DNA of 36,338 nt from Octopus bimaculoides (taxonomy: Eukaryota). Location: positions 156,553,213-156,589,550 of the forward strand of contig NC_068981.1 in NCBI RefSeq assembly GCF_001194135.2, read 5' to 3'. Position numbers and translations under genes: made by a program. Under the pieces are notes generated by a model, which searched no databases, was not told where the DNA came from, and was given only the letters and a program-made list of their open reading frames with translations. Of the stretch, positions 12,691 through 31,086 are shown one piece after another (the stretch's first letter is position 1; every line of letters begins with the position of its first letter).

Positions 12691-12898
12691 ATATTGATAA
12701 TGTTTTCATATATGGGAGCTTTATCTCCACTCTATAGAAGTGGTGAAATAGGAAGCTGCACACACACACATTCACACAGACTTTTACACACATATGCACA
12801 TGCAGAACTACATTCATACATACACATACACAATCACATGTGTGTATCAGTTACTTTCAAATCAATTTATAAATAATTTCAACCTACTTTTCTTGCAG

Positions 12899-13237
12899 CT
12901 GCTGGATCCCCAGATGACAGGGAAACCAATTTCTTGGAAAAGAGTCGAGTTTTTTAAAAATGAATTGGCAACAACTGTTGAACACTTAGACAAAGCTTTT
13001 CTCCAAGACGGACCATATTTAGCTGGTCAGAAAAACATATCAATCTGTGATATTCTTGGTGCTTGTGAGCTGATGCAGCTCAATGCTGTTCATGAAGAAG
13101 CTTGTTATGAAAATAACAATAATGTTAACTCTTGGATGCAACGAGTGAAGAAAGATTTGTCCTCGCATTTTGATGAAGCTCACAAAATTGTTTACAGAGC
13201 AAGAGAAGTATTTGGTAAATCTAAAAGTAAGCTATAA
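12899..13237 (+). CDS. GSTT1-like: Theta-class GST, last coding exon (LLDPQMTG...ISICDI...FDEAHKIVYRAREVFGKSKSKL*)
   Basis: Acceptor cttgcag at 12898, phase 0. N-capping box S-x-x-D is present and the stop is TAA at 13235-13237. The spliced CDS is 115+88+151+339 = 693 nt, or 230 aa. Confidence 0.95.
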   Translation: MLDPQMTGKPISWKRVEFFKNELATTVEHLDKAFLQDGPYLAGQKNISICDILGACELMQLNAVHEEACYENNNNVNSWMQRVKKDLSSHFDEAHKIVYRAREVFGKSKSKL

Positions 13238-14759: not shown

Positions 14760-16372
14760 AATTGGTATGTGAGACTGCCATAGAGCTGAGGATAAATTAA
14801 GATATTTGTAGCATATCCATTAGGGAAGCAGAGAATATGCCTGCAAACTTCTGAGATGCCATCATAATTACACTCTACAAGAACAAAGGCACCAAATCAA
14901 ACTGGAAATTACAGGGGCATTTCCCTGCTTTCCATTGCTGGAAAAATCCTGGTCCACATTCTCTTCAACAAGCTCATCACTAGTGTCTCTGAGAACAACT
15001 TGTCTGAAGCTCAGGCCGTAGCACTGTAGACATGGTATTTGGTATGTGTCAAGTCAATGAGAAATGCATTAAACAATGGATAGATTTGTATTCTGTGTTC
15101 GTAGATCCGACCAAAGCTTTTGACACAGTCAACAGAGATGCTTTGTGGACCATCCTAACCAAGATGGGCTGCCCACACAAGTTCACCTCATTGATAAGAC
15201 TCTTTTATGACAATATTACTGGCCAAGTTCTTTGCAATGGTGACTGCAGCAACTCTTTCAACATTTCCAATGGCATGAAACAGGCCGCTGTCTTGTTCAA
15301 CTTGTTCTTCACACTTGTCCTGCCTTACACATTGAAAGATTTAGAACTGGGCATATACATCAAATATCTCTCAGACAGCTCTGCTTTTGATCTCTGCCAA
15401 CTAACTCTCTGCTCATACAAAGACAGTGGAAAAGCTTATAACTGAAGCCCTATTTGTAGATGACTTATGGCATGCAAGGAAAATCACCAGCAGACCATTG
15501 TTGATCACTTTGCAGAAAATGGAGGTCCTAGTCTAAGCAGCCCCAGACACAGTTCACCCCCAGCCAAACATCACTGATGAAGGAGTCCAGCTTAAGTGTG
15601 TGGAGAGTTTTAGGTACCTTGGCAGCTGATGGATCATTGGACAGTGAAATATTATCCAGAATCCTCAAGACTAGCCAAGCACTTGGAAGACTGAAAGTGG
15701 AAGTCCTCCAGCATAAAGGTGTAAGTCTATTGACAATGCTCAAGATCTACAAGGGTGTAGTCGTTTCTACACTACTCTACGGCTGTCAAACATGGACCTC
15801 ATACTGTTGGCACATCAAACAGCTAGAACAATTTCACACAAGGGCACTGTGGAGGATCATGAGAATTTACCAGCAGGACAGTGTAACAAACCAAAAAGTA
15901 CTGGACAGAGCTTGCTCAACAAGAACTGAGTCAATGTTGCTGAAGGCTCACTTATGCTGGACTGGCAATGTTATTAGAATGATTGACAACTGTGTAGTAC
16001 CCAGACAGCTGTTGCAGAGTGAGCTCGCACAAACATAGAAGACCTAAACTGAGGTACAAAAACACTCTGAAAAGTAACCTCAAGTGGAGTGGTATTAGCC
16101 CATGTGAACTCAAAGCTTCTGTTGCAGACAGATCAGTGTGGAGGTCTCTCACCTCACAAGCAGCAGCTGCCTTCGAAGTGGTCCAGTGACAGCATCTCGA
16201 TGCTGCAAGAAAAGACATCACAGAGCAGCATCCACTTCAATCCAGTCAACAAGTTATCACTGTGACATCTGTGGGTGCCTGTGTGCTTCTAGCTTTGGAC
16301 TTTGGAACTCACATGCACTCTCATCACTGAGAACACAGACCTTGTCATCATCAGACACCGATGGACTACCTA
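14760..16372 (+). mobile_element. RTE-clade LINE, 5'-truncated reverse-transcriptase region, degraded
   Basis: LYKNKG...NYRGISLLSIAGKIL, FVDPTKAFDTVNR, LFVDD (15450-15464), LLYGCQTW and a C-terminal CDICG...H zinc motif. Many stops and frameshifts. Confidence 0.92.
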
Positions 16373-17342
16373 GAAAGTGTTCTTTCCTTTCCTTCTTTTT
16401 TTATATTCCACTCTTTAGAAATGCTGGGGGTCATGTGAAAATAGTCTTTGCTGTGCTTTCCATATCGTAGCTATTGTAAAAGGCTTGCACTTCTACCAGT
16501 CATTTATACACATTTTTAAACACTGAACAAATGGAGCTGCAACAAATGGAAGAAGATTATGATATTGGGCTACTAATGAGACTTCCATACTCAGCAATAA
16601 ACATTTCAATAAATATTTCAATGGACTCTTCATAGATTGTTGCAAAAAGCAGATTTACTTTCATGGTGCATAAGATTAACAATTGCAGAAAGTACTTTCA
16701 CTGGAAAAATAATATAACTTCTGCTGCTAATACAAATGTAAAGATACAAATTTAGAAAAACCTTTAGCAGCAAAGAACATAAAATAAATAGATTAATAAA
16801 TTTAAAATGTTATTTCATAAAAGAATTTTTTAATCATGCAGTTAGTATTTACATGTATTTAAATAGAAGCTAAACTAGACACATTTTGTAAAATCTGTAA
16901 TCATCCATAAGCATGCATATATATATATAAATATGCATGCATATATACATATTTGTGTACATATGTATGTGTGTGTTTACGACTATAGAAGAGTCAGTTC
17001 ATGTTACTAAAAATTTCAAAGTCACTCAAAAACATACAAGATGGCTGAATTCATTACATCTGCCTCATCCAATGTGGAAAAAGAAAAAGCAAAAAAGAAA
17101 AATAGATTTATACATTGCATTTTTTCTTTGAAACAGATTAAACTAATGTTTTCTAAGTACTTTGCATTTTAGTTTTTCTTGACATATTTATATCATAGTA
17201 TCTTCAAAATTTTATGCAATTTTTTTCAGAATGTGTTTCTCTAATAAATAACCAGTTTTCTTTTGTTTTTTTAATTTTCTGTTTCTCTTTCATCAACTAA
17301 TCTTTCTTCTACTGACCTTTTGTGTTGCTTTTAAAGCCACAC

Positions 17343-17558
17343 TCAAATATAATTTTGATTGATGGATAGTTTTGTTGATTTTGTCATTTTCAGAGTGAAA
17401 TTTACTGGTGAATATCCCATTGTTAGTTGATTTAAAGAAATCACGTCTATGTAATCACTGCAGTAGTCTACCAACAAATCTTCAGGAATGTCACCACTGA
17501 TTTCTATCATTACATCAGGGAAATGTTGTTTCAAACTTTCAGCATATTTTTTAGCAAC
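17343..17558 (-). CDS. QPRT: QPRT homologue, last coding exon (VAKKYAESLKQHFPDVMIEISGDI...IDVISLNQLTMGYSPVNFTLK...*)
   Basis: Acceptor tgtttcag at 17559. Aligns without gaps to human LKAQFPSVAVEASGGI...IDVISMG...DFSLK. TGA stop at 17345-17343. The total protein is 319 aa. Confidence 0.93.
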   Translation of the reverse strand, partial: VAKKYAESLKQHFPDVMIEISGDIPEDLLVDYCSDYIDVISLNQLTMGYSPVNFTLKMTKSTKLSINQNYI

Positions 17559-17699
17559 CTGAAACACAAACAAACCAAAAGTCAAAAATAAATTCAAAAT
17601 ACAAATTATATACAGTTTCTTGATGTATGTTTATTTTTTATCTTTATCATATTTGTTACAAGCTGACAGATGCAAGAACATCAAAGATAGAAAAGGAAT

Positions 17700-18040
17700 T
17701 CCAGAGTCTGACATTTTGAGGAACATGAATTGGACATAGGAGTTCATGTGGGGCCTGGTTGAAGAGACACAATTTGGGTCACCAGCAGAAAGAGTGAGTC
17801 AGGAGTGCTTGAAATGAAAAGTGATCGCTTTAAAATCACTAATAAAACATAGAGGAGATTGTATACTTGTGGGATGCCAACCAGGTGAGTAGCGTTTTGC
17901 AAGGGTTGGAGGTGGAGTGAGGGTGAACTAAAATACCTGTATATGTAGCAGCTGCACCATCTCATGCACTGAAACAGCACTCCATTGTGGATCTTGCCTG
18001 AGCTTTGTGGAGGCTTAGTTGTCATTGGTCCTGAAATTGA
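17700..18040 (-). mobile_element. CR1/L2-like LINE 3' fragment, degraded
   Basis: The minus strand reads LHKAQARSTMECCFSA*DGAAAT, LQPL and RLWNS in different frames. Confidence 0.6.
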
Positions 18041-18237
18041 TTCTAATGAGGAAGACTAGTACTCTGTGATGCAGTCATTGTTGCATCAACTCTCCTGATG
18101 TTGCTACAACTGTTGTTGTTTAACTTAACATCAGCTCTGATGAAACAGACCTCCAACCAAATGCAATTCAATTATGACCATTCATCCCTTTTTATAAATC
18201 AATTTGATGACTGGCATCCATGCTAGTGGAATGCTAA

Positions 18238-18645
18238 GAGCACCATCTGAGCGTGATCGTTGCCAGAGTAGCTGACTGGCTTCCGTGCCGGTGGCACATA
18301 AAAAGCACCATTTGAGTGTGATTGTTACCAGCGTTGCCTTACTGGCCTGTGAAAAAATATTCAAGCAGGGTCAATACCAGTGCTGCTGGATCGGCTCCGT
18401 GCAGGTGGCACATAAAAAACACCATTTGAGCATGGCTGTTGGCAGTATCGCCTGACTGGCCCTCATGTCAGTGGCATGTAAAAGCACCCACTCTGAGTGG
18501 TTGGCATTAGGAAGGGCATCCAGCTGTAGAAACTTTGCCAGATCAGATTGGAGCCTGGTGCAGCCATCTGGTTCGCCAGTTCTCAGTCAAATCGTCCAAT
18601 CCATGCCAGCATGGAATGCGGACGTTAAATGATGATGATGATGAT
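18238..18645 (-). repeat. Dispersed repeat family E with internal tandem subunits and (GAT)n end
   Basis: GAAGGGCATCCAGCTGTAGAAACT...CATGGAA.GCGGACGTTAAA.GATGATGAT. Same as 27219-27610 and 36113-36338. Confidence 0.85.
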
Positions 18646-19184
18646 ATATATTCAAACCTAGCACACATCTAAAATCTCTTTTCAGTGCAATTATAATTAC
18701 TTTATTATTTCATTTCATTATCTATGTAAACACAGTTTCGTTTTCCATGCCGTATGTTTAGAGAAAAAATCTTAAGATCCCTTGGCTCAACCCAACTCTC
18801 CCCCTTTCTCCCTCTCTTTCATGTTCATTTATTATTGTCATTTAGTCATTCATTTATCTAATTTTATCACAGTTTCTCTGACTGAAAACTGTTGGTTATA
18901 GTTCTAGTTAAGAATTCAAATGCCCAATTCTATCTTATTATTTATCATTGATATTTTCTCACACCGGCAGCCTGAGTTTTTGCTATTTNNNNNNNNNNCC
19001 TTTCTCCCTCTCTTTCATGTTCATTTATTATTGTCATTTAGTCATTCATTTATCTAATTTTATCACAGTTTCTCTGACTGAAAACTGTTGGTTATAGTTC
19101 TAGTTAAGAATTCAAATGCCCAATTCTATCTTATTATTTATCATTGATATTTTCTCACACCGGCAGCCTGAGTTTTTGCTATTT

Positions 19185-19965
19185 CACGGTGTGCCCTCCC
19201 TTCCCACCCCCACCACTTGTACCGGAAGTCTCTATCCTCTGACCTCTATCGGATGTCTCTCCCATGAACACCTCCAAAGGCTTAATGTTCCCCCATCCCT
19301 ACCTAGTGTTTATCTCCTATGTAATGTAGTGATTATGTGGTGCATAAAATGATGGTGTAGTGTATGCAGGTTGAAGGCTACTGTATGTTTACGAGTTCTG
19401 CCAAATGCGAGCTTCCTTTTCAGGTATGTGACACTGCTGTCCCCTATCCTAGGATCTTGCGGGTCCACACCTCCTATACCCTCAGGGTTGGCACACTTAA
19501 TGTTGGCACACTGAAAGGTAGGTCTGGTGAGATTGTTGAGATACTTGAACGGAGACATGTAGATTTGTGCTGCATCCAAGAAGTAAGATGGAGAGGAAGT
19601 TCTGCTAGGTTCCTTACAGGCAAAGAACATAGTTATAAGATTTTGGGGGCAGGAAACACTGACGGGGTCGAGGGCATGGGTATACTTCTTGCAGAGAAAT
19701 GGGTTGATAAGGTAATCGAGGTAGTCAAAGTCTGTGATAGAATACTTAAGATTAGATTAGTGCTGCAACATGGTTTAGCAACCATTATCTCAGATTATGC
19801 TCCTCAGCCAGGGCTACCTGATGAACAGAAAGACCGATTTCATGACACCCTCTTACAGACTACCTCATTGACGAATGACAAGGACCTTCTCTTTGTGGCT
19901 GGCAACTTCAATGGGCATGCTGGACAACATGCAAGGGGCTTCCATGGCGTACATGGATGCTATTG
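19185..19965 (+). mobile_element. RTE-type LINE 5' region with AP-endonuclease domain
   Basis: ORF 19364-19975 contains RVGTLNVGTL, DLCCIQEVRW, GILLAEKW, YAPQ and GNFNGH. It ends before the RT domain. Confidence 0.9.
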
Positions 19966-20477
19966 TTTGACTTAAAAATAACAGCTAAATCTTCATGTAA
20001 AGTATGAAATATAAAAGGCATTGGAGAGAGTTTATATAACTCTATAAGTTATGGATCACATTAAGGCCTTTTATATTCAATACATTATAAGTACTTCTGT
20101 ATGAAATAGCTGTAAAATGTCAAATATAAAAAAAAAAAAATCATCATTGTTGGTAGTGATGGCAGTGTTGGCAGTGTTGGCAGCGTCATCAACACCACCA
20201 TTGAAAACAATAGCAACAGTAACAACAATAGGAACGACAACAATAACAATAATAGCAATATTTCATGTTAGCTTTTCAGTGCTGGCATAGTTTGAAAGGT
20301 TTTACTGAGGCAGTGGCTTATGGTTCAATGCCTTCCTATAGCCAACTAACTCTTTTAGTCACCTCTTACAGCACAGGAATAGGATGATGTGCCTATTCTA
20401 AAACCAAGATACACATAATGATCAAACATAAAAGAAATTGATGAATTTGGAAATATAATTAAAACTTTATTTCAAAC

Positions 20478-20609
20478 CTCTGCTGTTGGGTTTTCAAATA
20501 ATATAACATCACAACCAGCATTAGCTGCTTCTAAAGCATCTTCAAGATTTCTGCATTCTACTTCAATTTTCATGGAAAACCCACTAACAAGCTTAGCATC
20601 TTTCACAGC
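20478..20609 (-). CDS. QPRT: QPRT homologue, coding exon 2 ([44 protein letters not shown])
   Basis: CAG acceptor at 20612-20610 and GT donor at 20477. The 132 nt are phase 0/0 and carry the KIEVEC and A..AG.D motifs. Not in the ORF track. Confidence 0.94.
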
Positions 20610-20899
20610 CTGTTTTCCATTTTCAAAGACAAATAAAAAATAAGATAGAGCAGAGTAAGTACAGACGTAGAAAATTCCACAAAATAAGAATATAATAATT
20701 TAGCAATAACTAATAACTTATATATAAAAACAATGAATGAAAAAATGTCATGATTTATATGGGAAAACAAACAAGGAAAATGTATGAAAACTGTTTATTT
20801 CTGATTAAATGAAAATAATTAGAGAAATGAAATATATTGCAAGTAAGCAGGCATATGCTGTGTACAAGAAACAAGATGGAAGGGAGTCTCAGCTAGACT

Positions 20900-21540
20900 C
20901 CTTGAGGCTAAGGAACTTACACACAGGTACGGTACAAATTCTGGGTAGATAATAACGATGGAGAAAGTGGATTCAGTAAATTATTTGCAGAGAAATGGAT
21001 TAGTTAGAGAATGTGATACATTTATCAGGTTTAAACTAGTCATGAACAACACAATTGTGACATTTAACTGTACATATGCTTTACACTCAGAGGTGGCAGA
21101 TGAATAGAAAGACTACTACTTTTGTGTGATCCTCCTGCAGACAACCTTGAATAATGAATGGCAGCAGTGTCTTATTGCATTTGGTGATTTTAATGAACTT
21201 ATTGGGCAACACTATGAAGGCTTCTCTGACTTGAATGGAAACTGTGGGTATGATATGAGGAACAAGGCTCTTGGAGGTCTACAGTCAAGACTCTCGGGGT
21301 TCTATGATCTAACCATTTGCAATACAGCTCATCTAATAAACAGTGACCATACAAACCGGGAAATAGGATAGCAGATGATTGTGAAAGCAAAGTCTTTCCC
21401 TGGTGAATAACATACTAGTCAATAAAGGCTAATTACTAGTGACTTAATAAAAGCTAGATAGAATAAGAGACAGTTTGGAGAGTGAAGATATGGAAGCCGG
21501 AAAAAAACACATTTTCAAATCGTGGGTTCAGAAAACTTAC
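20900..21540 (+). mobile_element. Highly degraded RTE-type endonuclease fragment
   Basis: FGDFNELIGQHYEGFSDLNGNCGYDMRN parallels the GDFNGHVG...G.HG..G.G.RN motif. Heavily disrupted. Confidence 0.6.
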
Positions 21541-21663
21541 GGTCAGTTAAATATGACTCTTTTCTTCCACTACAAAACCTCTTAGCTGCACCACATACAA
21601 AAATATATACACTAAAACATTTTCCATGCCAGCATGGATGACAGATATTAAAGAATGATGATG

Positions 21664-21694
<31 letters not shown>

Positions 21695-21909
21695 TGTGTG
21701 TGTTATTATCACTTTGACTTGATATCACATGATAGTGTCATCATAATGTGAGTGGTGTCCCTCATTTCCAGTATATCTGGTCATGGGGAAATATTGCCTT
21801 ACTTGGAAACAAGTGAGGAGTGGAGGCAGGAAGGGCATCCAGCCATAGGAAATCTGCCTTAGCAAATTCTGTCTGACATATGCAAGCATGGAAAGAGGAC
21901 GTGATGATG

Positions 21910-21910
21910 A

Positions 21911-21978
<68 letters not shown>
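21910..21978. repeat. (TA)n microsatellite, representative of many (TA)n, (CA)n, (GA)n, (AAT)n and (GAT)n tracts
   Basis: Direct inspection. Others lie at about 6407-6432, 9065-9101, 12440-12481, 21667-21695, 29013-29049, 31680-31860 and 34598-34632. Confidence 0.95.
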
Positions 21979-21984
<6 letters not shown>

Positions 21985-22561
21985 TAACCTTTTACATGAA
22001 GTCTGAAGCGAAGTAATTTAAACTTTATATAGAAAGTCAAGTTATAAATCATTGGTTAATGTTTTCTGCTATCTAAGATTTATTTTCTAGTTTAGCCTGT
22101 TAAGCATGTTCAGCTTTAGCAGCTATCACAGTATGAGATCACTATTAATAATTTTTATCTCTTCTTTACAGTTGCTAAGCAATCATGGAATGTACTCCCT
22201 GCATTATGTTTATTACAATTAATACACTTGTCACAGCTTAACAATCACCAAATTAATGAATATTTTACGGTCTTTCAGTCTTTACAGTCAGTCTTTCATG
22301 CAACATAGTCTTTAGTATTATTTCTGTTGCTTCTTTAACTACAGCGGTTCAGAATATTTATATATCAATAAATTATTTGCCTAAAGTATTTAGTGGATAT
22401 TTTAAAAGATTGCTTAAAGTAGACAGCTAAGACAAGTTTGTTTTCATAGCTTTATGTTCTTCCAAGCTTCCTGCTGTTATATACTTATTTTTTAAAATTT
22501 ATATTGTAGTTTGTGAACAATTATATAATTNNNNNNNNNNNNNNNNNNATATATATATATA

Positions 22562-22960
22562 TATAGCTGTTTCTGGGATATCCCAGGTGATGTGTCAGCA
22601 TTTCCATACACTGGGTAGTCCGTCATCAGTCTTTTATACATTGTTTTCTTTTATACACTGTGAATTCTCTGTCTGGAACTTTCCAACATACACACTTTGT
22701 CTCTGATGATGGAATACCCAGTGTATGGAGAGGCTGACCCTTCACCTGGGATATCCCAGAAACAGCTGTAAGACATTAATTACTTCTAATTCACCTTACT
22801 CTGATTAAACACTCTAAATGACCTGAGATTCTTGTCCTACCTTGGCTTTGTTGTCTTTTTCCTCACTGTGAACTTGGAACCTAACAAATGACCAATTATA
22901 GCACTTACAGAGTGTACCTATTCATTTAGATTATCAGTGAACTAAAATCCCCAAATTCTA
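22562..22960 (+). mobile_element. Probable Penelope-like retroelement (pseudo-LTR) remnant with a ~67 bp inverted terminal duplication
   Basis: 22564-22629 is an imperfect reverse complement of 22703-22768. It contains the hammerhead and abuts (TA)n. No RT or GIY-YIG coding sequence is seen, and the right boundary is uncertain. Confidence 0.55.
22698..22775 (+). ncRNA. Minimal type I hammerhead ribozyme motif
   Basis: Stem I is UGUCU (22698-22702) with AGACA (22771-22775). The core is CUGAUGA (22703-22709) and GAAA (22759-22762). Stem II is long (22710-22758). Stem III lies within the self-complementary ACAGCUGU. The GUA cleavage triplet is at 22768-22770. Confidence 0.75.
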
Positions 22961-22989
22961 TACATGCATACACACACACACACACACAT

Positions 22990-23715
22990 ATAAGGTTTGT
23001 TCAAAAAGTATCTGACTTTATCTTCTCCCACCAAAACTAACACTGCATAGGCAAAATCCTTTGGATAAAAGGTGATGCCACCCTTCCTGCACATATGTGA
23101 ACATTTTTGCACCAGTAGGCCATATCAATTCATGGGTGTTATGGATAGAGTACAGACATGTAGCGTGCACTCATCAGATTTTCATTTTCACACAAGACCA
23201 AATGCATTGAGCAGAGACCATAAACCCATGTCTCATCACCAGTGATTATGGTCTCCATGAAGTCTGGGTTGTGGCTTGCACAGTGCAGTATGTTCTGAGT
23301 GATTTTTATGTGGAGTTGCATCTGCTGCTCTGCCAGTGCCTTGGGGATGAATTTTGCTGACACTCTCTGCATATATAACTCTTTCATTAAAATGGAATGC
23401 ATTGATCCTATGTTGAATCCCACTTTGTGAGCAATTTCCTTAATTGTTAGTCAATGGTTTTCCATGGCTATTTGCCAAACTTTCCTCAATTAGCTCCTTG
23501 CTTTGGCTTGTAGATGGCCTGCTTGAGTGTGCCTCACTCTCCACTGAGGTGTAGCCAGGTTTGATCAAAGTTTTGCCCACGGCATCATTGCCAAAGGCCT
23601 GTTGAATTTTCTGGATAGTTTGAGCTTAAGCACCATCAAGCTTTTAGCAAAAGTTGATGCAATATCTCTGCTCAATGCATTCCATGAAAATGAAAATCCA
23701 ACAAGCGTGCACTTT
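22990..23715 (-). mobile_element. Second mariner remnant (fold-back derivative)
   Basis: On the minus strand, MECIEQRYCINFC...IQQAFGND runs from 23685 to RVSAKFIP...IITGDETWVYG at 23217. A TIR-like TAAGGTTTGTTCAAAAAGTATCTGAC is at 22991. Confidence 0.85.
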
Positions 23716-25849
23716 ATGTCTGCCTCAACAAAATCCAAGCATAGAAAAACAAAAGTTTAAATGATTATAATAATAAGGATGATGATGAAATATATGATTT
23801 ACATCCTATCGCAAACAAGCCTCAAATGAATACTAAATTGTGACGTAAACAGCCAAAGAAAGTGGAGCTGGAATGTGTAGCATGGCAAAGTAAGGTAGAG
23901 TCCCAGGGTGAAGGAAGAATGACAGGAAGAGGAAAAAGATCTCTTTCAACTACCAAGCAAAGTGAAAGATCATAGGATGGGAAGAGTAAGAAGTTATGCA
24001 TGCTTGTGTGTGTGTGTGTGTATGTGTGAACTTGTAGATATACATGGGTAAAGAGTAGAGACATGTGGGTACACATATACTGACAAGATGTTGTTTTGGG
24101 ATATGTGTGTGTGAAGACATGTTGGTGTACATGGGGGTGTCAAGGGGGAAAGACAGTGGAAGAGATAAGGTTCATGTAAGGGAAAGTTGTGGGGGTGTGA
24201 GTGAAAACAGTGAGGGCATATAGGTGACTGAGATATAGACAGTAGGGTGTGGGTAGGGTGCATGGGATCAGTATGGGAAAGTGGAGAGAGAGAGAAAGAG
24301 TAAGAGAAAGAGAGATACAAAGGGAAGGAAGTATAGTAAGGTGGCTGGTGGCAAGAAAAGATTATGTTGGAGGAGAACTGAGACTGAAAGCTGTATAGGT
24401 TTGGAGAGAGAAGATGAGCTTCTGTTCCCCATGGAGGCAAAGGAGAGGATGCTGGTGAGGTAACTATGCTGAAGATTGAAAGGTTTTAGGTGGAATGGTC
24501 AACAGAGCAGAAATGTTGAGGACAGGCAATCTGTTATTAAATATATATTTTATGATATTACTTAGGCATAATGGTACTAATAATCAGTTGTTAGAGCAAA
24601 GCATTCAATGAGTACAGAGCATAATATCAATTAACAAATGACAAAAAAAAACAAGTTATGTTATCACTTTCATTAAATTGGCGTTAGGTAGTGCATCCAA
24701 CTGTAGAAACTCTGCCAAATGCTCTGTCACTTCACCATATCAATGAATCTATTAAACACAGTGATTAATGAAATCCTGTGGTCTATGAAAACTTCATTAC
24801 TCTAATCATATCAACATTTTCTATTTTGATATGATCATGAGAATATATTATATTATCACACTATGATAGCTGGATTAGTGAGGGATTATAATGTTTGAGT
24901 TGATAAGTTGTTGGTTTCTTGGTAATAGTTTCATGAGTTCATATTCTATAACCAAAGACTTGTTGTTGCTAACCGACTTAATGGTGTCCTAAGCTGAAGA
25001 GTTTGCGGTCCACATCATCTTTTATTTTTTACTTCTTCCAGTCATTGAACTGCAGTCATGCTTCTCCATATTCAATCTCCAACATCATTCTTATTGTTCT
25101 ACCCCACTTTCTTCACCATCCTGATGCATTTGAAACAAGGGATTCCATCATATCTATTAATACCTTAAAAACTCCACCATCACACTTCTGTAATGCTAGC
25201 CATCACTCTTCACAACTTCACTTATGATTGACATACATCACTCTCTATGAGAGAGAGAGAGAGCCTAACTCTAAGACTATCCATTGCCTCTCTCTCTCTT
25301 TTCCTACCTAACATGTAATTGCCATCACTGTCTCTTTCCCATTAACTTCTGTCATTACTATCTTCCTTCCATTACTCCTCCCAGTATTGTCTCTTCCATT
25401 AATCCCACTTCAACCATCCTCTCACTCCAATAATTCTGTTTCTTTCATCATATATTTTCTTCTTACTTCTTCTCACTTAGTAAACTAAATAACTGCTTGT
25501 TATTTTTGGCACATTGTCTTGACTAATAAAGACTATGTACAACAGTGGGAGATTCTTCAGAGTTGCAACATACAAGGCAGCTCCACTCTATAAAGTGCCA
25601 GGTAAATGAGCAGAGACAACATAGAGTCAAAGGAGTTTAATATTGCCAAAATTACGATAACTTCTCTAGTATCGGAATCATGAAAAAGTATACCAAGTAC
25701 ATTTTGTAAAGGGGTTGATAACAGGAAGGACATTGCTAGGAAAGCAAGTAACTGAATAAGGACTATCTCAGATCATGAGGACATATCCAGTTAATGCCAA
25801 CATGGAAAGCAGACATAAAATGATGATGATGATGATGATGATGATACAT

Positions 25850-26057
25850 TATTTACAATTGACGGATATTTGTCCTCATCTTGTTTGTTGTTAATACGTT
25901 TCAGCTGATATACCATCCAGCCTTCAACAGGTGTCTTGGGGAAATTTCGAACCTGGGTTCTCATTCCTAAGGTATTTTTCGACATTATTATTATTTTGGA
26001 ATCTTGGGGTTAGTAGCCTGCGCTCTTAACCACTATGCCATATGCCCGTGGGCATAT
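25850..26057 (-). mobile_element. tRNA-like-headed short element with a degenerate hammerhead-like motif
   Basis: A-box TGGCATAGTGGT (26040-26029), B-box-like GGTTCGAAATT (25953-25943), then CTGTTGA-stem-GAAA (25930-25899). Confidence 0.55.
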
Positions 26058-27009
26058 AGAACTGGATAATGATGATGATGATAACAATGATGATGATGGT
26101 GGTGATTTTATGACATGTAGCTATTTATCAATTGAAACTGGAAAGACATTATTCACATCAAACTATTTTCCACCAAAGAAAAATCAAAGGTTTCCTCTTC
26201 TGTTTGCCTCTTATGTTGGCCTGCATATGTACAACATTTAACTCTTGATTTCATAGTAGTTGTTACAACTATTATTATTTTTTTTTTTATGTGGGGATTT
26301 CTATGTATAGCTGTATGCATTTTACTTCTAACCAGACTACAAAAATGTAGATGCAGAACTTATTTTGCTCACTAGTAGACTGAGACAATCAGAGTTATGT
26401 GCCGAAGTTTATAAACAATAATTTAATCCAACATAAATATTAAGAAACACTAACAAATAGACTAAGAAGACTATGAACACTTGAGATATCGGTAACAAAC
26501 GAGTAATTAGGTCACTAAAAATCATTAATACATCACTGGAATTGGCAATGTTACTAGTTTATTTTAGCCAGTCTCCTTCTATTTCTTTAACCACTCATCT
26601 CATTTTAACTCTGCTGAGCTTGTCTCTGTTCTACCTACTTCCATTCTTTTCTGAACAATAACAGCAGTTGTTTTATGTTTTGTTTTTTTTCCAACAAGGT
26701 TTTCTACTCAACAAAGTCAACAGGTTTCTTCAGAGGTAAGATACATTCTTGTTGTACTGGAAGTTCATAGTAGTTTGACATCAAGTGTGTTTGCTTTGTG
26801 TAAAGAAAAATAAAGGTGTTAATCATTGTGCATTATTTATAGTCTCTAAAGTCTAAAGATAAACAAAAGAGTTAGGAACAAGAAGGATTGGTAAAGTGTG
26901 TTCCTGTGCATGCATGCACATATGTGTGTGTGTGTTGATAACTAGTATATTAACTAGCCTTACACACTTTTCTGTAGCTTAGGTAGACAACAACAAAAAA
27001 CAGTAATAA

Positions 27010-27140
27010 TAATCCTTTCAACAAATTTTTTAGGAAGGAACTAGTCGATTACATTAACCCCAGTACTCAACTGGTACTTAATTTATCGACCCTGAAAGGA
27101 TGAAAGGCAAAGTTGACCTTGGCAGAATTTGAAATCAAAA
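27010..27140 (-). mobile_element. Family B SINE, partial
   Basis: CTGGTACTTAATTTATCGACCCTGAAAGGATGAAAGGCAAAGTTGACC core. Confidence 0.75.
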
Positions 27141-27218
27141 CGTATATAGTATGCTACACTATATCATATTGTATTAAGAAAAGGAAAACTACCAGAATGG
27201 GTAGTCATTTATTTCCTC

Positions 27219-27610
27219 TGGCACGTAAATAGCACCATTTGAGCAGCATCATTACCAGCGTCGCCTAACTGGCACTTGTGCCGGTGGCACGTTTAGAAAA
27301 TCATTTGAGCGAGGTCGTTGCCAGTGCCGCTGGACTGGCTCCTGGCTCCCGTGCAGATGGCACGTAAAAAAACACCATTTTGAGCGTGGCCATTGCCAGT
27401 ACCACGTGACTGGCCCTTGTGCTGGTGGCACGTAAAAGCACCCACTACACTCTCGCACGGTTGGTGTTAGGAAGGGCATCCAGCTGTAGAAACTCTGCCA
27501 GATCAGATTGGAGCCTGATGCAGCCATCCGGTTCACCAGTACTCAGTCATATCGTCCAATCCATGCTAGCATGGAAAGCAGACGTTAAACGACGACGATG
27601 ATGATGATGA
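27219..27610 (-). repeat. Dispersed repeat family E
   Basis: High similarity to 18238-18645, with four TGGCACGT-anchored subunits. Confidence 0.85.
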
Positions 27611-29011
27611 CAGCAAGAAACCTGTTCCTATCTCTCTATTATACTCTTTTTTTTCAATGTCTAGCATAAACTGCCTCCATTAATGCTACAACCTCACTCA
27701 ATCAAAGGGTCTTGTCTTGTGAGCAAATAGGCAGTCTCACTAGTATTGGTGGTGGTGGTGGTGGGGGGGGGGTTACAAAAAAGCAACCAATATACTCTGT
27801 AAAGTGGCGGTGCTAGGAAGAGCATCCAGTCATAGAAACCATGTCAAAACAGCAGACATAGAAGCTTGACACAGTCCTCTGATCTGTATGATACTGTCAA
27901 ACCATCCAACCTATTCCAGTATGGAATATGGATATCAAATGATGTTGCTGATGATGTACAGCTTCTTATTACAAACTTAATAACAACTGCAACAAAAGTA
28001 ATTCCAGTAATGAAAACAATTACCTCAACAGCAGTAGCAAGTATAGCAGCAACTGAATGGCATCAGTAACTACAACAACTAAAAAGGCAAATTATTTTAA
28101 AAACACCAGTTTGTGTTGTCCAAGTGAGACTTAATCAACCAGTTCATATTCTATATTCCTTGTCAACATCATAAAATTTCTAAATGATACCATAAAAGCT
28201 TTATACCATTTTATGCATCAGTATTCAAAAAGTGTATTTGTCTTTTAATTGATTCCCAGTTCTTTCTTTTTTTTTTTTTTTTTGACCCTGGTTGCTAAAA
28301 TAATTTTTGTTTCAGCTAGGCTCAAGGAAATTATTCATAGGGACAGAAACCTTATTCCTTTACAGGTTTCAGTTATTGAACAGCAGCTATGCTAGGAAAG
28401 CAGCCTCAGCAGCTTTAATTGATAATTCTGTTGAACCAGTAAATTAAGGGACAGATTATAAACAAAAACAGTTTTTTAGACTGGTGTAAATATAACCACA
28501 GATACAGATGGATACACACACGCAATCATCATCATTATCATCATCACCAGCACCAGCACCACCACCAAAAACAACAACAACATCATCCTTTTACATCTAC
28601 TTTCAATACTGGTGAGTTGCTACTCCCATAGACTGTGGTGTTCATATATGTTATTTGGCTTGTTACTTCACTTCTACTGTCAGATGCCATTTCTATTGCC
28701 AGCCACTTTACAGAGAGCACTGGGTGCATTTTCAAGGGGCAGTTGAATAGTCATTTGGAGAGACAGGACTATAGGAATCACACAGCCTTCTGCTTTCTCT
28801 GCTCATTTGCAATCGTTTTTCAGTGTATAGAGGGAGCATTTTTCATGGTATCAACACTAGAAAGGATATGTTTACCTGTCCCTCTAAGAGTAGCACAATT
28901 TGGAGCCTTTCTCATGGCACCAAATTGTGTAAAGGTGTAAAGGTGCTTTGTATACAGGAAATGAAGAGAATATTTAATACCCTGAGATATGTGGACTGAG
29001 GAGGAGAGAAT

Positions 29012-29049
<38 letters not shown>

Positions 29050-29119
29050 TTGCAGTCACAAATAGGTAAGTACCCAAAAATCTAAGTTTCTACATGTAAC
29101 TTCTTTATTATTAATATAT

Positions 29120-29269
29120 NNNNNNNNNNNNNNNNNNNNNNNNNNNNNNNNNNNNNNNNNNNNNNNNNNNNNNNNNNNNNNNNNNNNNNNNNNNNNNNNN
29201 NNNNNNNNNNNNNNNNNNNNNNNNNNNNNNNNNNNNNNNNNNNNNNNNNNNNNNNNNNNNNNNNNNNNN
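29120..29269. other. Assembly gap (N run)
   Basis: 150 N. Other gaps are at 8130-8139, 18989-18998, 22531-22548 and 34633-34761. Confidence 0.99.
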
Positions 29270-29999
29270 ATATATATATAATGAATGTGACTTTTGTCCT
29301 CAGCATGCAAAACTACATTTAAAAAAAAATAATCTGGTGAAAATTTGAAATGCTTCAAATGCTTGGAAGAAAATTAACAGAATTACCGATTTTTATTTTC
29401 AGTGAAAGTGCAAGTTTAGAAATGGTTGAACTTGGCAAATCGAAAGCTCTCCTCGGGTAGAACTTAATTGGTGATTAACATCTCAGAGGAAAGAATTATC
29501 TACTAGAAGATATTTACAGTGTATCTAGTAATATTCAGTCAACTATTAAGTCTGATGCATTGTTGGGATAATTCATTGGTAATCAACCAATGCGTTTCGT
29601 TTACTTTCACACATAAAATCAGGTTTCTTTCAGTTTTATTTTATTGCCGGTTATGAACGATTAAAGTTTTATTTAACTTTCATCTATTCATCTTCCTTTC
29701 ACTTTATTGTCTGCCATTATATATCCATCAAGCGAAAATCCTCGTGCCTGTTGACATCAGCATGTTTTCGACGAAATACTGTTACTAGCAAAAAAAACAA
29801 AACAAAAGGTGTTACTAGCTGATTGTTCTGGAAGATGGTGACACGTTTGTTTGTGCTAGCTTGTCAGCTGTTAAACAGTTGTTGACAAAAGGGGGCACTA
29901 ATGAATACATGAGATATTCACCACAATAGCATCTTCCCACCATGTCACTATACACACCTCCATTCAACTCAACACAACCTCTTTATAATACAATATTTT

Positions 30000-30235
30000 C
30001 AGCTTCTTCACAACTACGACGCTATGATGGGAACCTCTAAGGGTCGCATGGTCTGCTCGAAATAGCATCTACATCTCCCTCAGATCACATCCTATTGTCT
30101 TAAATAAAGAAATGACACAAGAGTTAAGGTAGTACCACATACTCCTAAAAAGACGGTGGTCACAGCTGGAATACCTTTGATCATAGATCAGCTCAATCGA
30201 GATTAACCTAAGCTAAACAACAAGAACAACATAGT
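30000..30235. repeat. Dispersed repeat family D
   Basis: The shared AAATAGCA...ATCTCCCTCA.ATCA...CCTA...GGAATACCTTTGATCAT block also occurs at about 2420-2595 and 35150-35420, and inverted at about 18100-18200. Confidence 0.65.
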
Positions 30236-30291
30236 TTCTGATAAAGACAAGAAATTGCTTATGTTAGTAGGGAAATCACAAGTTTACTTAC

Positions 30292-30903
30292 CTTTTGGAT
30301 ACTTCCTGCAGTCCATATATGGTTGTCTCGCAAGATAATCATAGAAGATAAATCGTACCTGTGGGTTGCTAAACCCCCAACAAAAAGAGAATACTTCTCT
30401 ACTAGACGGAATCCCGGAGTAGTTCTGCGTGTATCAGCCAGTTTCCCTTTCCAGCCAACCCCTTCAGCTTTCAGGGCCAATTTGCGGGCCAAAGTCGCTA
30501 GTCCACTTGCCCTGCACGCACAGTTGAGGGCTACACGTTCTCCGAGCAACAAGCACCGTACTCTGCCTTTGATAATCGCAACTGTTTGGACTGGATTCAG
30601 GTATGTTCCTTCCGGGTAAAGCCATTCAATTTCACACTCCAGCTCTTTAAATACAGCATCTATAAATGGTCTTCCTGCCAACACACCAGCCTGTCTCATG
30701 ATCAAGGCAGCGGTCACTTTTTTCTCCCCTACTACGAACCCCCCGAAATCAAAATTTGGCGAATCTTCTTTAATCCATTCTCTGGCTAAATGTTGTACAG
30801 TGACAGGTGATAATGCATGGCAAGTTTCAGGACCCGAAGTAATCCGAGAATGGTTATTATTGTAATGTAAATAGTTCTTCCTTTGGTCGTAATAAGCAGA
30901 CAT
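30292..30903 (-). CDS. QPRT: Quinolinate phosphoribosyltransferase (nicotinate-nucleotide pyrophosphorylase) homologue, coding exon 1
   Basis: First in-frame ATG at 30903; the track start at 30912 is a TTG. Motifs EWIKED, GVLAG.PF, LLLGERVALN, TRRTTPGFRLVEKY, HRYDL and RDNH are present. Donor AAG|GTAAGT at 30291. An upstream exon cannot be excluded. Confidence 0.95.
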
Positions 30904-31038
30904 TTTATTCAAAACATATCAGAAACAGAATGCCTTTGCCTTTCCCCTTTATTTTACACTGACCTACAACACACTACAACGCAGGTTGTTCAGAAGTTGT
31001 CCTATCTATGTAGACACCTGCGAAATGTTTGTGTAAAG

Positions 31039-31086
31039 GCGTGCGCACGCGCGCGCGCGTGTGTGTGTGTGTGTGTGCATGTGTAT
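31039..31086. repeat. 48-bp strictly alternating purine-pyrimidine tract including (CG)6
   Basis: GCGTGCGCACGCGCGCGCGCGTGTG...GCATGTGTAT, read directly from the sequence. Confidence 0.9.

Follow-up and report, generated by a model that had tools for sequence, protein, structure and literature searches.

The window analysed here, a 36,338-nucleotide stretch of Octopus bimaculoides contig NC_068981.1, contains a gene that resembles human QPRT, but several residues that bind substrate in the human enzyme are replaced. The initial annotation, made from the DNA letters alone, proposed that the protein is a pseudoenzyme or acts on a new substrate, which raises the question of whether the octopus gene still encodes an ordinary QPRT, encodes a protein with a changed role, or is an artefact or a decaying copy.

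Gene structure and transcripts

The QPRT/NadC gene consists of three exons on the minus strand with a coding sequence of 960 nt (319 aa and the stop codon), both introns have GT-AG sites, and the product is identical to O. bimaculoides XP_014773331.1. The features, in coordinates of the window, are as follows.

30904-31077, minus strand: 5' UTR, minimum length (RNA contig X5 extends to 31077)
30292-30903, minus strand: exon 1, codons 1-204; ATG at 30903-30901, donor GTAAGT after 30292
20610-30291, minus strand: intron 1, 9682 nt, repeat-rich, with gaps at 22531-22548 and 29120-29269
20478-20609, minus strand: exon 2, codons 205-248, with AG acceptor and GT donor; E222 (human E201, kept) and F242-E243-N244 (human LDN)
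17559-20477, minus strand: intron 2, 2919 nt, with a gap at 18989-18998 and a LINE endonuclease fragment
17343-17558, minus strand: exon 3, codons 249-319 and the TGA stop; S269-G270-D271 (human SGG), S289-L290-N291 (human SMG) and M295 (human Q274)
17127-17342, minus strand: 3' UTR, minimum length (X10 record 9 spans 17127-17555)

Exon 1 supplies the N-terminal domain together with the barrel's first half, including R123, R159, R160, H181, R182, I190 and R192. The 5' UTR carries a (CA)n/(CG)n tract at its end and a two-codon uORF, ATGTTTTGA, at 30917-30909. All three assembly gaps are intronic; a duplicated 186-nt block flanks one of them.

Exons 1, 2 and 3 lie on a single RNA record (X5 record 16: 30291-31077, then 20475-20608, then 17256-17555), the exon order of which agrees with X10 record 9 and X9 record 27, and the junction of exon 1 with exon 2 was found in four further RNA runs, where a contig ends at 30291 and continues into exon 2. 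Spliced contigs with the predicted exon joins were present in 8 of the 8 runs examined, and since the exons are connected in mRNA, the frame is confirmed across the assembly gaps. The intact 319-aa spliced ORF of the initial annotation is thus borne out by the exon model, the identity with XP_014773331.1 and the RNA contigs. The chromosome assemblies of O. sinensis and Argonauta hians have the identical three-exon structure, 319-aa ORFs that are identical or nearly so were found in four species, and mRNA contigs of Sepia QPRT were present in at least 12 runs.

Orthology, fold and copy number

Both Pfam domains of the family were detected (QRPTase_N, PF02749, residues 58-133, E = 1e-17; QRPTase_C, PF01729, residues 136-305, E = 1.2e-45). 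On the nadC equivalog model TIGR00078, the octopus protein scores 272.9 bits (cut-off 198.4), about 40 bits under two other molluscs (309.5 and 315). Assignment to the ModD family was considered and rejected (54.4 bits compared with a TIGR01334 cut-off of 178.85 and with 273 on nadC); the octopus protein is a modified orthologue and not an ancient paralogue. The AlphaFold2 model (pLDDT 85, pTM 0.83) shows with confidence a predicted QPRT barrel, i.e., an open alpha/beta-barrel with an N-terminal alpha/beta sandwich, and the top Foldseek matches were human QPRT (2JBM; target TM-score 0.96, rmsd 1.5 A).

In the neighbor-joining (NJ) tree, the coleoid sequences form a clade within Mollusca, on a long stem, and no unassigned match clusters with them. 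The protein database searched covers the proteomes annotated for O. bimaculoides, O. sinensis, O. vulgaris and A. hians, and no second or canonical cephalopod QPRT was found among the best 120 matches (all E < 1e-89). Among annotated proteins and transcriptome contigs, which the copy-number search covered, the octopus gene is, as judged from sequence, the single-copy coleoid orthologue of QPRT (NadC family, EC 2.4.2.19, type II phosphoribosyltransferase).

Substitutions in the active site

The octopus and human proteins align in a single ungapped stretch (E = 9e-83), with the constant offset of +21 given in the initial annotation. In human numbering, the octopus changes include K139R, K171R, D222E, G250D and G270N; these five substitutions and their codon coordinates had been reported exactly (R160, R192, E243, D271 and N291), whereas M169I, Q274M, G136D, K49R and L221F had been overlooked. 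In known QPRTs, three backbone nitrogens (G249, G250 and G270) and three side chains (K139, N223 and Q274) bind the 5'-phosphate, E201 and D222 bind the ribose hydroxyls, and R138, H160, R161 and K171 bind the carboxylate (PMC3633916), and M169 contacts the nicotinate (PMC4726147). For human QPRT, K139A and K171A serve as inactive variants (PMC5517448), and the activity of K172A in the Mycobacterium tuberculosis enzyme is undetectable (PMC4065032). The codons at the ligand-contact positions are as follows.

30424-30426, minus strand: codon 160, AGA, Arg (human K139); Lys (AAA) in Argonauta and Sepia, an Octopus-specific change
30334-30336, minus strand: codon 190, ATC, Ile (human M169, nicotinate-ring contact); Ser in Sepia
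30328-30330, minus strand: codon 192, CGA, Arg (human K171); CGG in Argonauta, AAA (Lys) in Sepia; two nucleotide steps from AAR
20493-20495, minus strand: codon 243, GAA, Glu (human D222, ribose-hydroxyl ligand); common to Argonauta, Asp in Sepia
17490-17492, minus strand: codon 271, GAC, Asp (human G250, backbone NH to 5'-phosphate); common to Octopus, Argonauta and Sepia
17430-17432, minus strand: codon 291, AAT, Asn (human G270); His in Sepia, G or S elsewhere
17418-17420, minus strand: codon 295, ATG, Met (human Q274, side chain to 5'-phosphate); common to Argonauta, Gln in Sepia

In the basic set that binds quinolinate, octopus keeps R102, R138, H160 and R161 (these and E201 had been correctly listed as kept), and both K139 and K171 are Arg, so the otherwise invariant set is incomplete. 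The same is true of the PRPP/NaMN ligands, in which E201, N223 and G249 are kept and D222E, G250D, G270N and Q274M are changed; because G250 and G270 make backbone contacts and are variable elsewhere, the strong departures in the ribose/phosphate set are confined to D222 and Q274. All four cephalopods have R102, R138, H160, E201, N223, S248 and G249 unaltered, and the charge is retained at each replaced anion-binding residue (Lys/Arg exchanges in either direction, Asp to Glu).

Conservation among homologues

The close-homologue alignment comprised 118 non-cephalopod sequences (117 database matches and human). The columns of K139, K171 and D222 were K, K and D in all 118 of these metazoan sequences, so the octopus residues are not common among invertebrate QPRTs; the initial annotation had named their being common as fatal to its proposal. 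R161 was likewise unvarying in 118 of 118 and almost unvarying in a distant set of 149 representatives, clustered at 50% identity. In that set, position 139 was K in 139, position 171 K in 139 and position 222 D in 108 (the remainder mostly gaps or fragments), and Arg occurred at position 139 in none and at position 171 in three.

The two glycines are weaker markers. G270, which had been singled out as the weakest of the five, is indeed variable (S in 46 of 122 sequences), but G250 is also weaker than was assumed: it is N in 15 of the 149 representatives, with many bacterial NadC among the G250N proteins, and D (SGD) in P0230, an otherwise canonical NadC with 317.9 bits on the nadC model. With Asn or Asp at G250 elsewhere and Ser often at G270, these two of the five prominent changes may do no harm.

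Among 77 columns invariant in 21 non-lophotrochozoan metazoans, coleoids break 9-11 and other molluscs 0-4 (median 1). Human QPRT, which is fully active, itself breaks 9 of the 84 columns with at least 97% conservation in an invertebrate-rich set, so the number of broken columns by itself proves nothing. As had been suspected, the breaks are concentrated in ligand-contact residues: of the invariant columns, Octopus breaks 6 of the 13 that contact ligand compared with 5 of the remaining 64 (Fisher p = 0.002).

Order of the changes and selection

The distribution of the changes shows that the predicted ligand pocket was rebuilt stepwise, starting in the last ancestor shared by cuttlefish and octopods. 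G136D, M169X, M220L, L221F, G250D and G270N/H are common to both groups, K171R, D222E and Q274M to Octopus and Argonauta, and K139R is found in Octopus alone (K49R was placed on the same step). Sepia has independent changes of its own (R161K, Y162F and an Asn insertion in the TRKT motif). The substitutions that the initial annotation had treated together are therefore shared across cephalopods only in part (G250D coleoid-wide, K171R and D222E octopod-wide, K139R confined to Octopus) and do not represent one event.

Octopus QPRT is under strong purifying selection and is not decaying, with dN/dS of 0.049 between O. bimaculoides and Argonauta (dS 0.83), 0.058 between O. sinensis and Argonauta, and 0.02 in a Sepia pair (12 synonymous and 1 nonsynonymous differences). 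The codon of Arg192 itself differs synonymously between Octopus (CGA) and Argonauta (CGG), and Arg is retained. With a gene that is expressed and correctly spliced, the preference for selection over decay was well founded. Compared with seven other molluscs, Octopus also carries 2-4 times more unique amino-acid changes (four outgroups; 28 of 28 Tajima tests p < 0.05), an excess that could partly stem from a generally faster cephalopod lineage.

Functional interpretation

In Octopus, the single copy of the last enzyme of tryptophan-to-NAD synthesis is retained, expressed and strongly conserved, yet several substrate-binding residues that do not vary in other animals have been replaced. The octopus protein probably no longer does the textbook QPRT job in the textbook way. 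We lean towards a shifted function, either as a retuned phosphoribosyltransferase (with other substrate preference or kinetics) or as a ligand-binding protein with little catalysis. Because charge is kept at residues otherwise fixed from bacteria to vertebrates, we infer that the site is still selected for a small anionic ligand (carboxylate, phosphosugar or both), and the pocket would have been freed from the exact geometry needed for efficient conversion of quinolinate and PRPP to NaMN, CO2 and PPi. The trigger was probably the truncated kynurenine pathway that cephalopods are reported to have, with 3-hydroxykynurenine diverted to ommochrome pigments; this would have reduced or removed the endogenous supply of quinolinate, upstream of which KMO, KYNU and HAAO act. 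Truncations of this pathway in Cephalopoda are reported in a preprint, in the text of which the genes concerned are not named but referred to a figure (bioRxiv 10.64898/2026.06.05.730449); our literature search found no paper that mentions both HAAO and octopus.

A possible, though less probable, alternative is an ordinary working QPRT, in which the substitutions form a co-adapted or compensated set that preserves the reaction from quinolinate to NaMN, perhaps with a shifted Km or pH/temperature optimum. Arg would stand in for Lys and Glu for Asp, the phosphate would still be held by backbone NH groups, and purifying selection would reflect a requirement for NAD synthesized de novo or for quinolinate to be detoxified. 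All the exchanges are conservative, Lys-to-Arg swaps at binding (non-covalent) positions often leave partial activity, the seven residues intact in all four cephalopods are what a working phosphoribosyltransferase needs, and the score lies above the nadC equivalog cut-off, all of which counts against a shifted function. The retained charges, the unchanged fold, a dN/dS of 0.05, typical for a functioning enzyme, the SGD of a canonical-looking NadC, and the single-copy state without a replacement paralogue also favour a working enzyme. However, the invariance of K139, K171, D222 and R161 in 118 of 118 close homologues, which almost never gives way in the 149 distant ones, indicates that ordinary QPRT function is evidently intolerant even of swaps between Lys and Arg or Asp and Glu. 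In addition, different invariant residues were broken independently in two coleoid lineages, the stem branch is accelerated, and the same preprint reports the pathway as truncated (bioRxiv 10.64898/2026.06.05.730449).

The initial annotation also suggested an inactive regulatory subunit, which would here control a canonical QPRT paralogue in a mixed hexamer. Eukaryotic QPRTs form dimers with shared active sites, and hexamers (PMC4726147), so a degenerate subunit could co-assemble in principle, but we regard this as very unlikely: the best 120 protein matches (E < 1e-89, the proteomes of three Octopus species and Argonauta covered) contain no canonical cephalopod QPRT to serve as partner, and the coleoid protein is an orthologue, not a duplicate, with no other match in the tree grouping with coleoids. 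A recently formed pseudogene, or an artefact of annotation or assembly, for which three N gaps inside the gene span (one with the flanking duplication) might speak, is refuted by gaps that are all intronic, mRNA contigs that join the exons in frame, RNA in 8 of 8 runs, the near-identical ORFs in four species and dN/dS of 0.05, far from the value near 1 expected of such a relic. Taken as a whole, the initial interpretation is partly supported.

Comparison with known systems

Compared with canonical QPRT/NadC structures (human 2JBM, 4KWV and 5AYX-5AYZ; pig 4I9A; yeast Bna6 3C2E), the octopus protein has the same two-domain architecture and fold, a gapless colinear alignment, an orthologous tree position (45% identity to human QPRT, 53-63% to other molluscs), and R102, R138, H160, R161, E201, N223, S248 and G249. 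It differs from them in K139R, K171R, D222E, G250D, G270N, Q274M and M169I, in its lower nadC score than other molluscs (by about 40 bits), its accelerated stem and a pathway that is reportedly truncated. ModD (TIGR01334), a NadC-like paralogue family of bacterial molybdate operons, has the QPRT fold with chemistry unassigned and an assumed functional divergence. Degenerate NadC-like members of the superfamily (P0223, P0228, P0237, P0240 and P0253) lack one or both active-site lysines through non-conservative replacements (T, S, Q, C, N, P) and score 138-175 bits, under the nadC cut-off (some are fused proteins of 466-537 aa), whereas octopus keeps all the charges and scores over it.

Caenorhabditis elegans is not known to have a QPRT, and UMPS substitutes for it. 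According to the preprint, insects have lost the HAAO-to-QPRT branch, a change associated with their use of 3-hydroxykynurenine to make ommochromes, and Ostariophysi have lost QPRT (bioRxiv 10.64898/2026.06.05.730449). The downstream kynurenine pathway has been altered by lineage in these three groups, as is reported for cephalopods, but they deleted QPRT, whereas coleoids retained it under strong constraint with an altered pocket.

Gene structure and transcription

The QPRT gene comprises three exons with GT-AG intron ends:

30903-30292, minus strand, QPRT exon 1
20609-20478, minus strand, QPRT exon 2
17558-17343, minus strand, QPRT exon 3

The coding sequence of 960 nt encodes a protein of 319 aa that is identical to XP_014773331.1 (Octopus bimaculoides), and the gene is already annotated by NCBI as nicotinate-nucleotide pyrophosphorylase. 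The codon coordinates that the initial annotation gave for five active-site substitutions (K139R, K171R, D222E, G250D and G270N in human numbering) proved exact in every case. Five runs of N are present in the window, three of them within the QPRT span (18989-18998, 22531-22548 and 29120-29269), every one intronic. The continuity and frame of the gene across these gaps are established because RNA contigs, which are independent of the assembly, join the exons: a single contig (record 16 of RNA run X5) spans 30291-31077, 20475-20608 and 17256-17555, its exon order is matched by record 9 of run X10 (depth 234) and record 27 of run X9, and in four further runs (one from a sister species) a contig passing the end of exon 1 at 30291 reads into the start of exon 2. 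The three exons and their splice sites are the same in the chromosome assemblies of O. sinensis and Argonauta hians.

The gap at 18989-18998 has an exact direct duplicate of 186 nt on its two sides (18803-18988 equals 18999-19184); the duplicate is intronic, leaves the coding sequence untouched, and probably reflects an overlap left unmerged where scaffolds were joined, not real sequence. The 5' UTR starts within a (CA)n/(CG)n tract near 31058-31077, and its transcribed part contains a two-codon uORF (ATG TTT TGA; 30909-30917, minus strand) 14 nt ahead of the QPRT start. For O. sinensis (nucleotide sequence L004), protein P0002 is the NCBI-predicted isoform X2 without exon 2 (132 nt, an in-frame skip), which would delete the E201-to-D222 half of the ribose site. 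The exon 1-exon 3 joint of this isoform was absent from the RNA contigs of the eight runs examined, in which all contigs reaching the end of exon 1 carry on into exon 2.

Other elements of the window are as follows:

18422-18895, high-depth intronic segment
21266-22213, high-depth intronic segment
25532-26005, high-depth intronic segment
26954-27901, high-depth intronic segment
28850-29323, high-depth intronic segment
19364-19975, plus strand, LINE remnant in QPRT intron 2, endonuclease/exonuclease/phosphatase ORF (PF03372, E = 1.4e-5)
15032-15445 and 15577-16038, plus strand, intergenic LINE remnants past the QPRT 3' end, reverse-transcriptase fragments (PF00078, E = 3e-7)
12794-13237, plus strand, 147-aa ORF with a weak GST_C_3 match under the cut-off (E = 0.0035)

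RNA contigs cover the intronic segments at depths from the thousands into the tens of thousands, as is typical for a SINE-like repeat family of high abundance; several of these segments have in common a short "SWMPFL"-type ORF motif, and two SINE-like copies (18499-18645 and 27459-27605) are 90% alike. The 147-aa ORF probably represents the final exon of a GST-like neighbour that lies on the strand opposite to QPRT.

Family membership and structure

By sequence, fold and orthology the octopus protein is a QPRT. Both QPRT domains of Pfam are present, among solved structures the nearest are human and pig QPRT (E about 9e-83), and the alignment with the human enzyme is ungapped at a constant offset of +21, as initially proposed. 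The NCBIfam nadC equivalog model (TIGR00078) is passed with 272.9 bits (cut-off 198.4). A confident AlphaFold2 model from a 38-sequence alignment (pLDDT 85, pTM 0.83) is disordered only in the N-terminal 25 and the last 4 residues, and superposes on human QPRT with a target TM-score of 0.96 and an rmsd of 1.5 A. Judged from its residues, the protein fails the most conserved features of the family in the identity of its substrate-binding positions.

Substitutions at conserved and ligand-binding positions

The rarity of the substitutions was assessed in a close-homologue alignment (the best 120 database hits, with human QPRT and the window protein added) and in a distant set of 149 representatives of 50%-identity clusters, from bacteria to animals. 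Every one of the 118 non-cephalopod sequences of the close alignment has K, K and D in the columns of K139, K171 and D222, and these residues are near-fixed among the 149 distant representatives, where only fragments or clearly diverged proteins depart from them. That the octopus residues are common in invertebrates was rejected on these two sets of sequences. All five substitutions had been put forward as unusual; this holds for K139R, K171R and D222E, and the case is weaker for G250D and G270N: position 270 is Ser in 46 of 122 aligned sequences, and position 250 is Asn in 15 of the 149 distant representatives and Asp in P0230, an otherwise canonical-looking homologue (317.9 bits on the nadC model). 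Further conserved positions, missed initially, are broken in the octopus protein (M169I, Q274M, G136D, K49R and L221F). Five NadC-like homologues (P0223, P0228, P0237, P0240 and P0253) are without one or both active-site lysines, with non-conservative replacements; they score 138-175 bits, under the nadC cut-off, and some are fused into proteins of 466-537 aa.

In the pig QPRT-NaMN structure, G249, G250 and G270 bind the phosphate through their backbone N, and K139, N223 and Q274 through their side chains; E201 and D222 hold the ribose hydroxyls, and R138, H160, R161 and K171 the carboxylate (PMC3633916); the nicotinate ring is contacted by M169 (PMC4726147). Six of the named contact residues that are invariant elsewhere are changed in the octopus, together with the variable contact position G270. 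Human QPRT K139A and K171A serve as inactive mutants (PMC5517448), and K172A abolishes the activity of the M. tuberculosis enzyme (PMC4065032); the literature searched yielded no data on K-to-R variants of QPRT.

A bare count of broken conserved columns was dropped as proof of a shift, as the active human QPRT itself departs from 9 of 84 columns whose conservation in an invertebrate-rich set is 97% or more. It was replaced by a non-circular test, with 77 invariant columns defined on 21 non-lophotrochozoan metazoans alone, and by a test for enrichment at contact residues. Non-cephalopod molluscs (25 sequences) break 0-4 of the 77 columns (median 1), mainly by Leu/Ile/Val swaps; the count is 11 in Octopus and 9 in both Argonauta and Sepia. 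The breaks of Octopus fall on 6 of 13 invariant contact residues vs 5 of 64 other columns (Fisher p = 0.002); the enrichment is also found in Argonauta (p = 0.0055) and is not significant in Sepia (p = 0.17). It is the position of the breaks, not their number, that matters.

History of the changes and selection

Proteins of O. vulgaris, O. sinensis and Argonauta hians were taken from cluster members, and the only other cephalopod sequence among the matches listed was P0003/P0126 (72% identical), from RNA runs that include SRR19578108, a Sepia esculenta library. The codon comparison distributes the changes as follows:

Common to Sepia and octopods: L23I, G136D, M169I/S, M220L, L221F, G250D, G270N/H, S282T/A
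Common to Octopus and Argonauta: K171R (CGA/CGG, two steps from AAR), D222E, Q274M
Octopus alone: K139R and K49R, both AAA to AGA
Sepia alone: Asn inserted in TRKT (TRNKT), R161K, Y162F, N106S, F194H

Therefore, after a shared first round, two sister lineages independently broke different invariant ligand-binding residues, and in both the charge was kept in every such replacement. RNA editing was rejected as the cause of the K-to-R changes, which are genomic; same-species RNA contigs carried no exon differences, although such contigs would mask partial editing. The genomic AAA-to-AGA changes of Octopus are of the same A-to-G type as RNA editing. Two Sepia transcripts (L001 and L005), probably from two species or haplotypes, differ by 12 synonymous changes and one nonsynonymous change (Ile/Val), the latter an A-to-G difference of the type made by coleoid RNA editing. 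No squid, sepiolid or Nautilus orthologue was among the best 120 matches from a collection of 5.8 billion proteins, and many squid transcriptomes are public; in these groups the gene may be lost, barely expressed or simply unsampled.

The gene is not decaying: dN/dS is 0.049 between O. bimaculoides and Argonauta (dS 0.83; 106.5 synonymous and 29.5 nonsynonymous differences) and 0.058 between O. sinensis and Argonauta. The value for O. bimaculoides and O. sinensis (0.22) comes from a very close pair with 16 differences only, and dS was saturated, giving no value, for Sepia vs Octopus and for the bivalve baseline pairs. In the Octopus lineage, unique amino-acid changes are 2-4 times more numerous than in seven other molluscs (four outgroups; p < 0.05 in 28 of 28 tests), and in a neighbour-joining tree the coleoid stem is long and lies within Mollusca. 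Acceleration on the stem and tight constraint thereafter are what an episodic change of function would be expected to leave; a generally faster cephalopod clock could contribute to the acceleration.

Discussion

The gene is a real, expressed and strongly constrained QPRT orthologue, single-copy within the annotated proteins and transcriptome contigs searched, and its ligand pocket was remodelled stepwise from the coleoid ancestor onward. Since the charges of the pocket are kept and its otherwise immutable identities are not, the site is probably still under selection for binding an anionic ligand, and not for efficient canonical quinolinate turnover. On these sequence comparisons we lean somewhat towards a functional shift, in which the protein would be a phosphoribosyltransferase, retuned or re-specified, or else a protein that binds a ligand. 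That it is still essentially a canonical QPRT, with the changes in its pocket co-adapted, is a serious possibility, to which we give less credence. The idea of an inactive regulatory subunit in a hetero-oligomer with a canonical paralogue, raised initially, did not survive and is now very improbable, because no canonical octopus paralogue occurs among the best 120 matches, all with E < 1e-89, the range where it would fall, in a database that covers the annotated proteins of four octopod species; nor did any unnamed match among these 120 group with the coleoids in the tree. That the locus is an assembly artefact or a pseudogene is ruled out for practical purposes by the exon joints in mRNA, an ORF kept in four species and the low dN/dS. 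What probability remains falls to explanations outside those named.

A 2026 preprint, based on a survey of kynurenine-pathway genes across more than 5,000 eukaryotes, reports that the HAAO-to-AMR branch (AMR being 2-aminomuconate reductase, ASPDH) is systematically missing from insects, the probable cause being the diversion of 3-hydroxykynurenine to ommochromes, that QPRT was lost in ostariophysan fishes and, in one sentence that leaves the genes to a figure, that the pathway is truncated in Cephalopoda (bioRxiv 10.64898/2026.06.05.730449). For HAAO, KYNU and ACMSD in octopus, the literature search gave nothing beyond this sentence. Should HAAO be one of the missing genes, coleoids would make no quinolinate, and a constrained but altered QPRT would be an orphan retained for another reason.

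As a tentative scenario, coleoids would have truncated the kynurenine pathway and channelled 3-hydroxykynurenine into ommochrome pigments; the orphaned QPRT, unlike that of insects, would have been retained since the cuttlefish-octopod ancestor (roughly 250-300 My ago) with a re-specified pocket, and would act on or sense a different anionic ligand, e.g., another carboxylate of the pyridine or quinoline class or some other phosphosugar. If true, this would be a clade-wide neofunctionalisation of a core enzyme of NAD biosynthesis without gene duplication, and would show the fate of such an enzyme once its pathway is cut upstream. To our knowledge, QPRT alone provides the entry from tryptophan to NAD in animals and alone removes the excitotoxin quinolinate. 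Two lysines and Asp222, effectively invariant across life, have been replaced in a whole animal clade that keeps the gene under tight constraint, which makes the octopus QPRT a natural experiment on the purpose of these residues. If it is still active, the list of truly essential QPRT residues would have to be revised; if it is inactive, cephalopods would have lost de novo NAD synthesis with QPRT repurposed, or would treat quinolinate differently. The latter outcome would bear on metabolism in a large, glutamatergic nervous system and on the biochemistry of ommochrome pigments. The variant would be of interest to specialists in NAD metabolism and pseudoenzymes; we found nothing in the literature on the altered active site of octopus QPRT.

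Compared with known systems, the octopus protein scores about 40 bits under the QPRTs of Patella and Mizuhopecten on the nadC model and falls far under the cut-off of the ModD model (TIGR01334); it belongs to a known family and is not a new kind of system.
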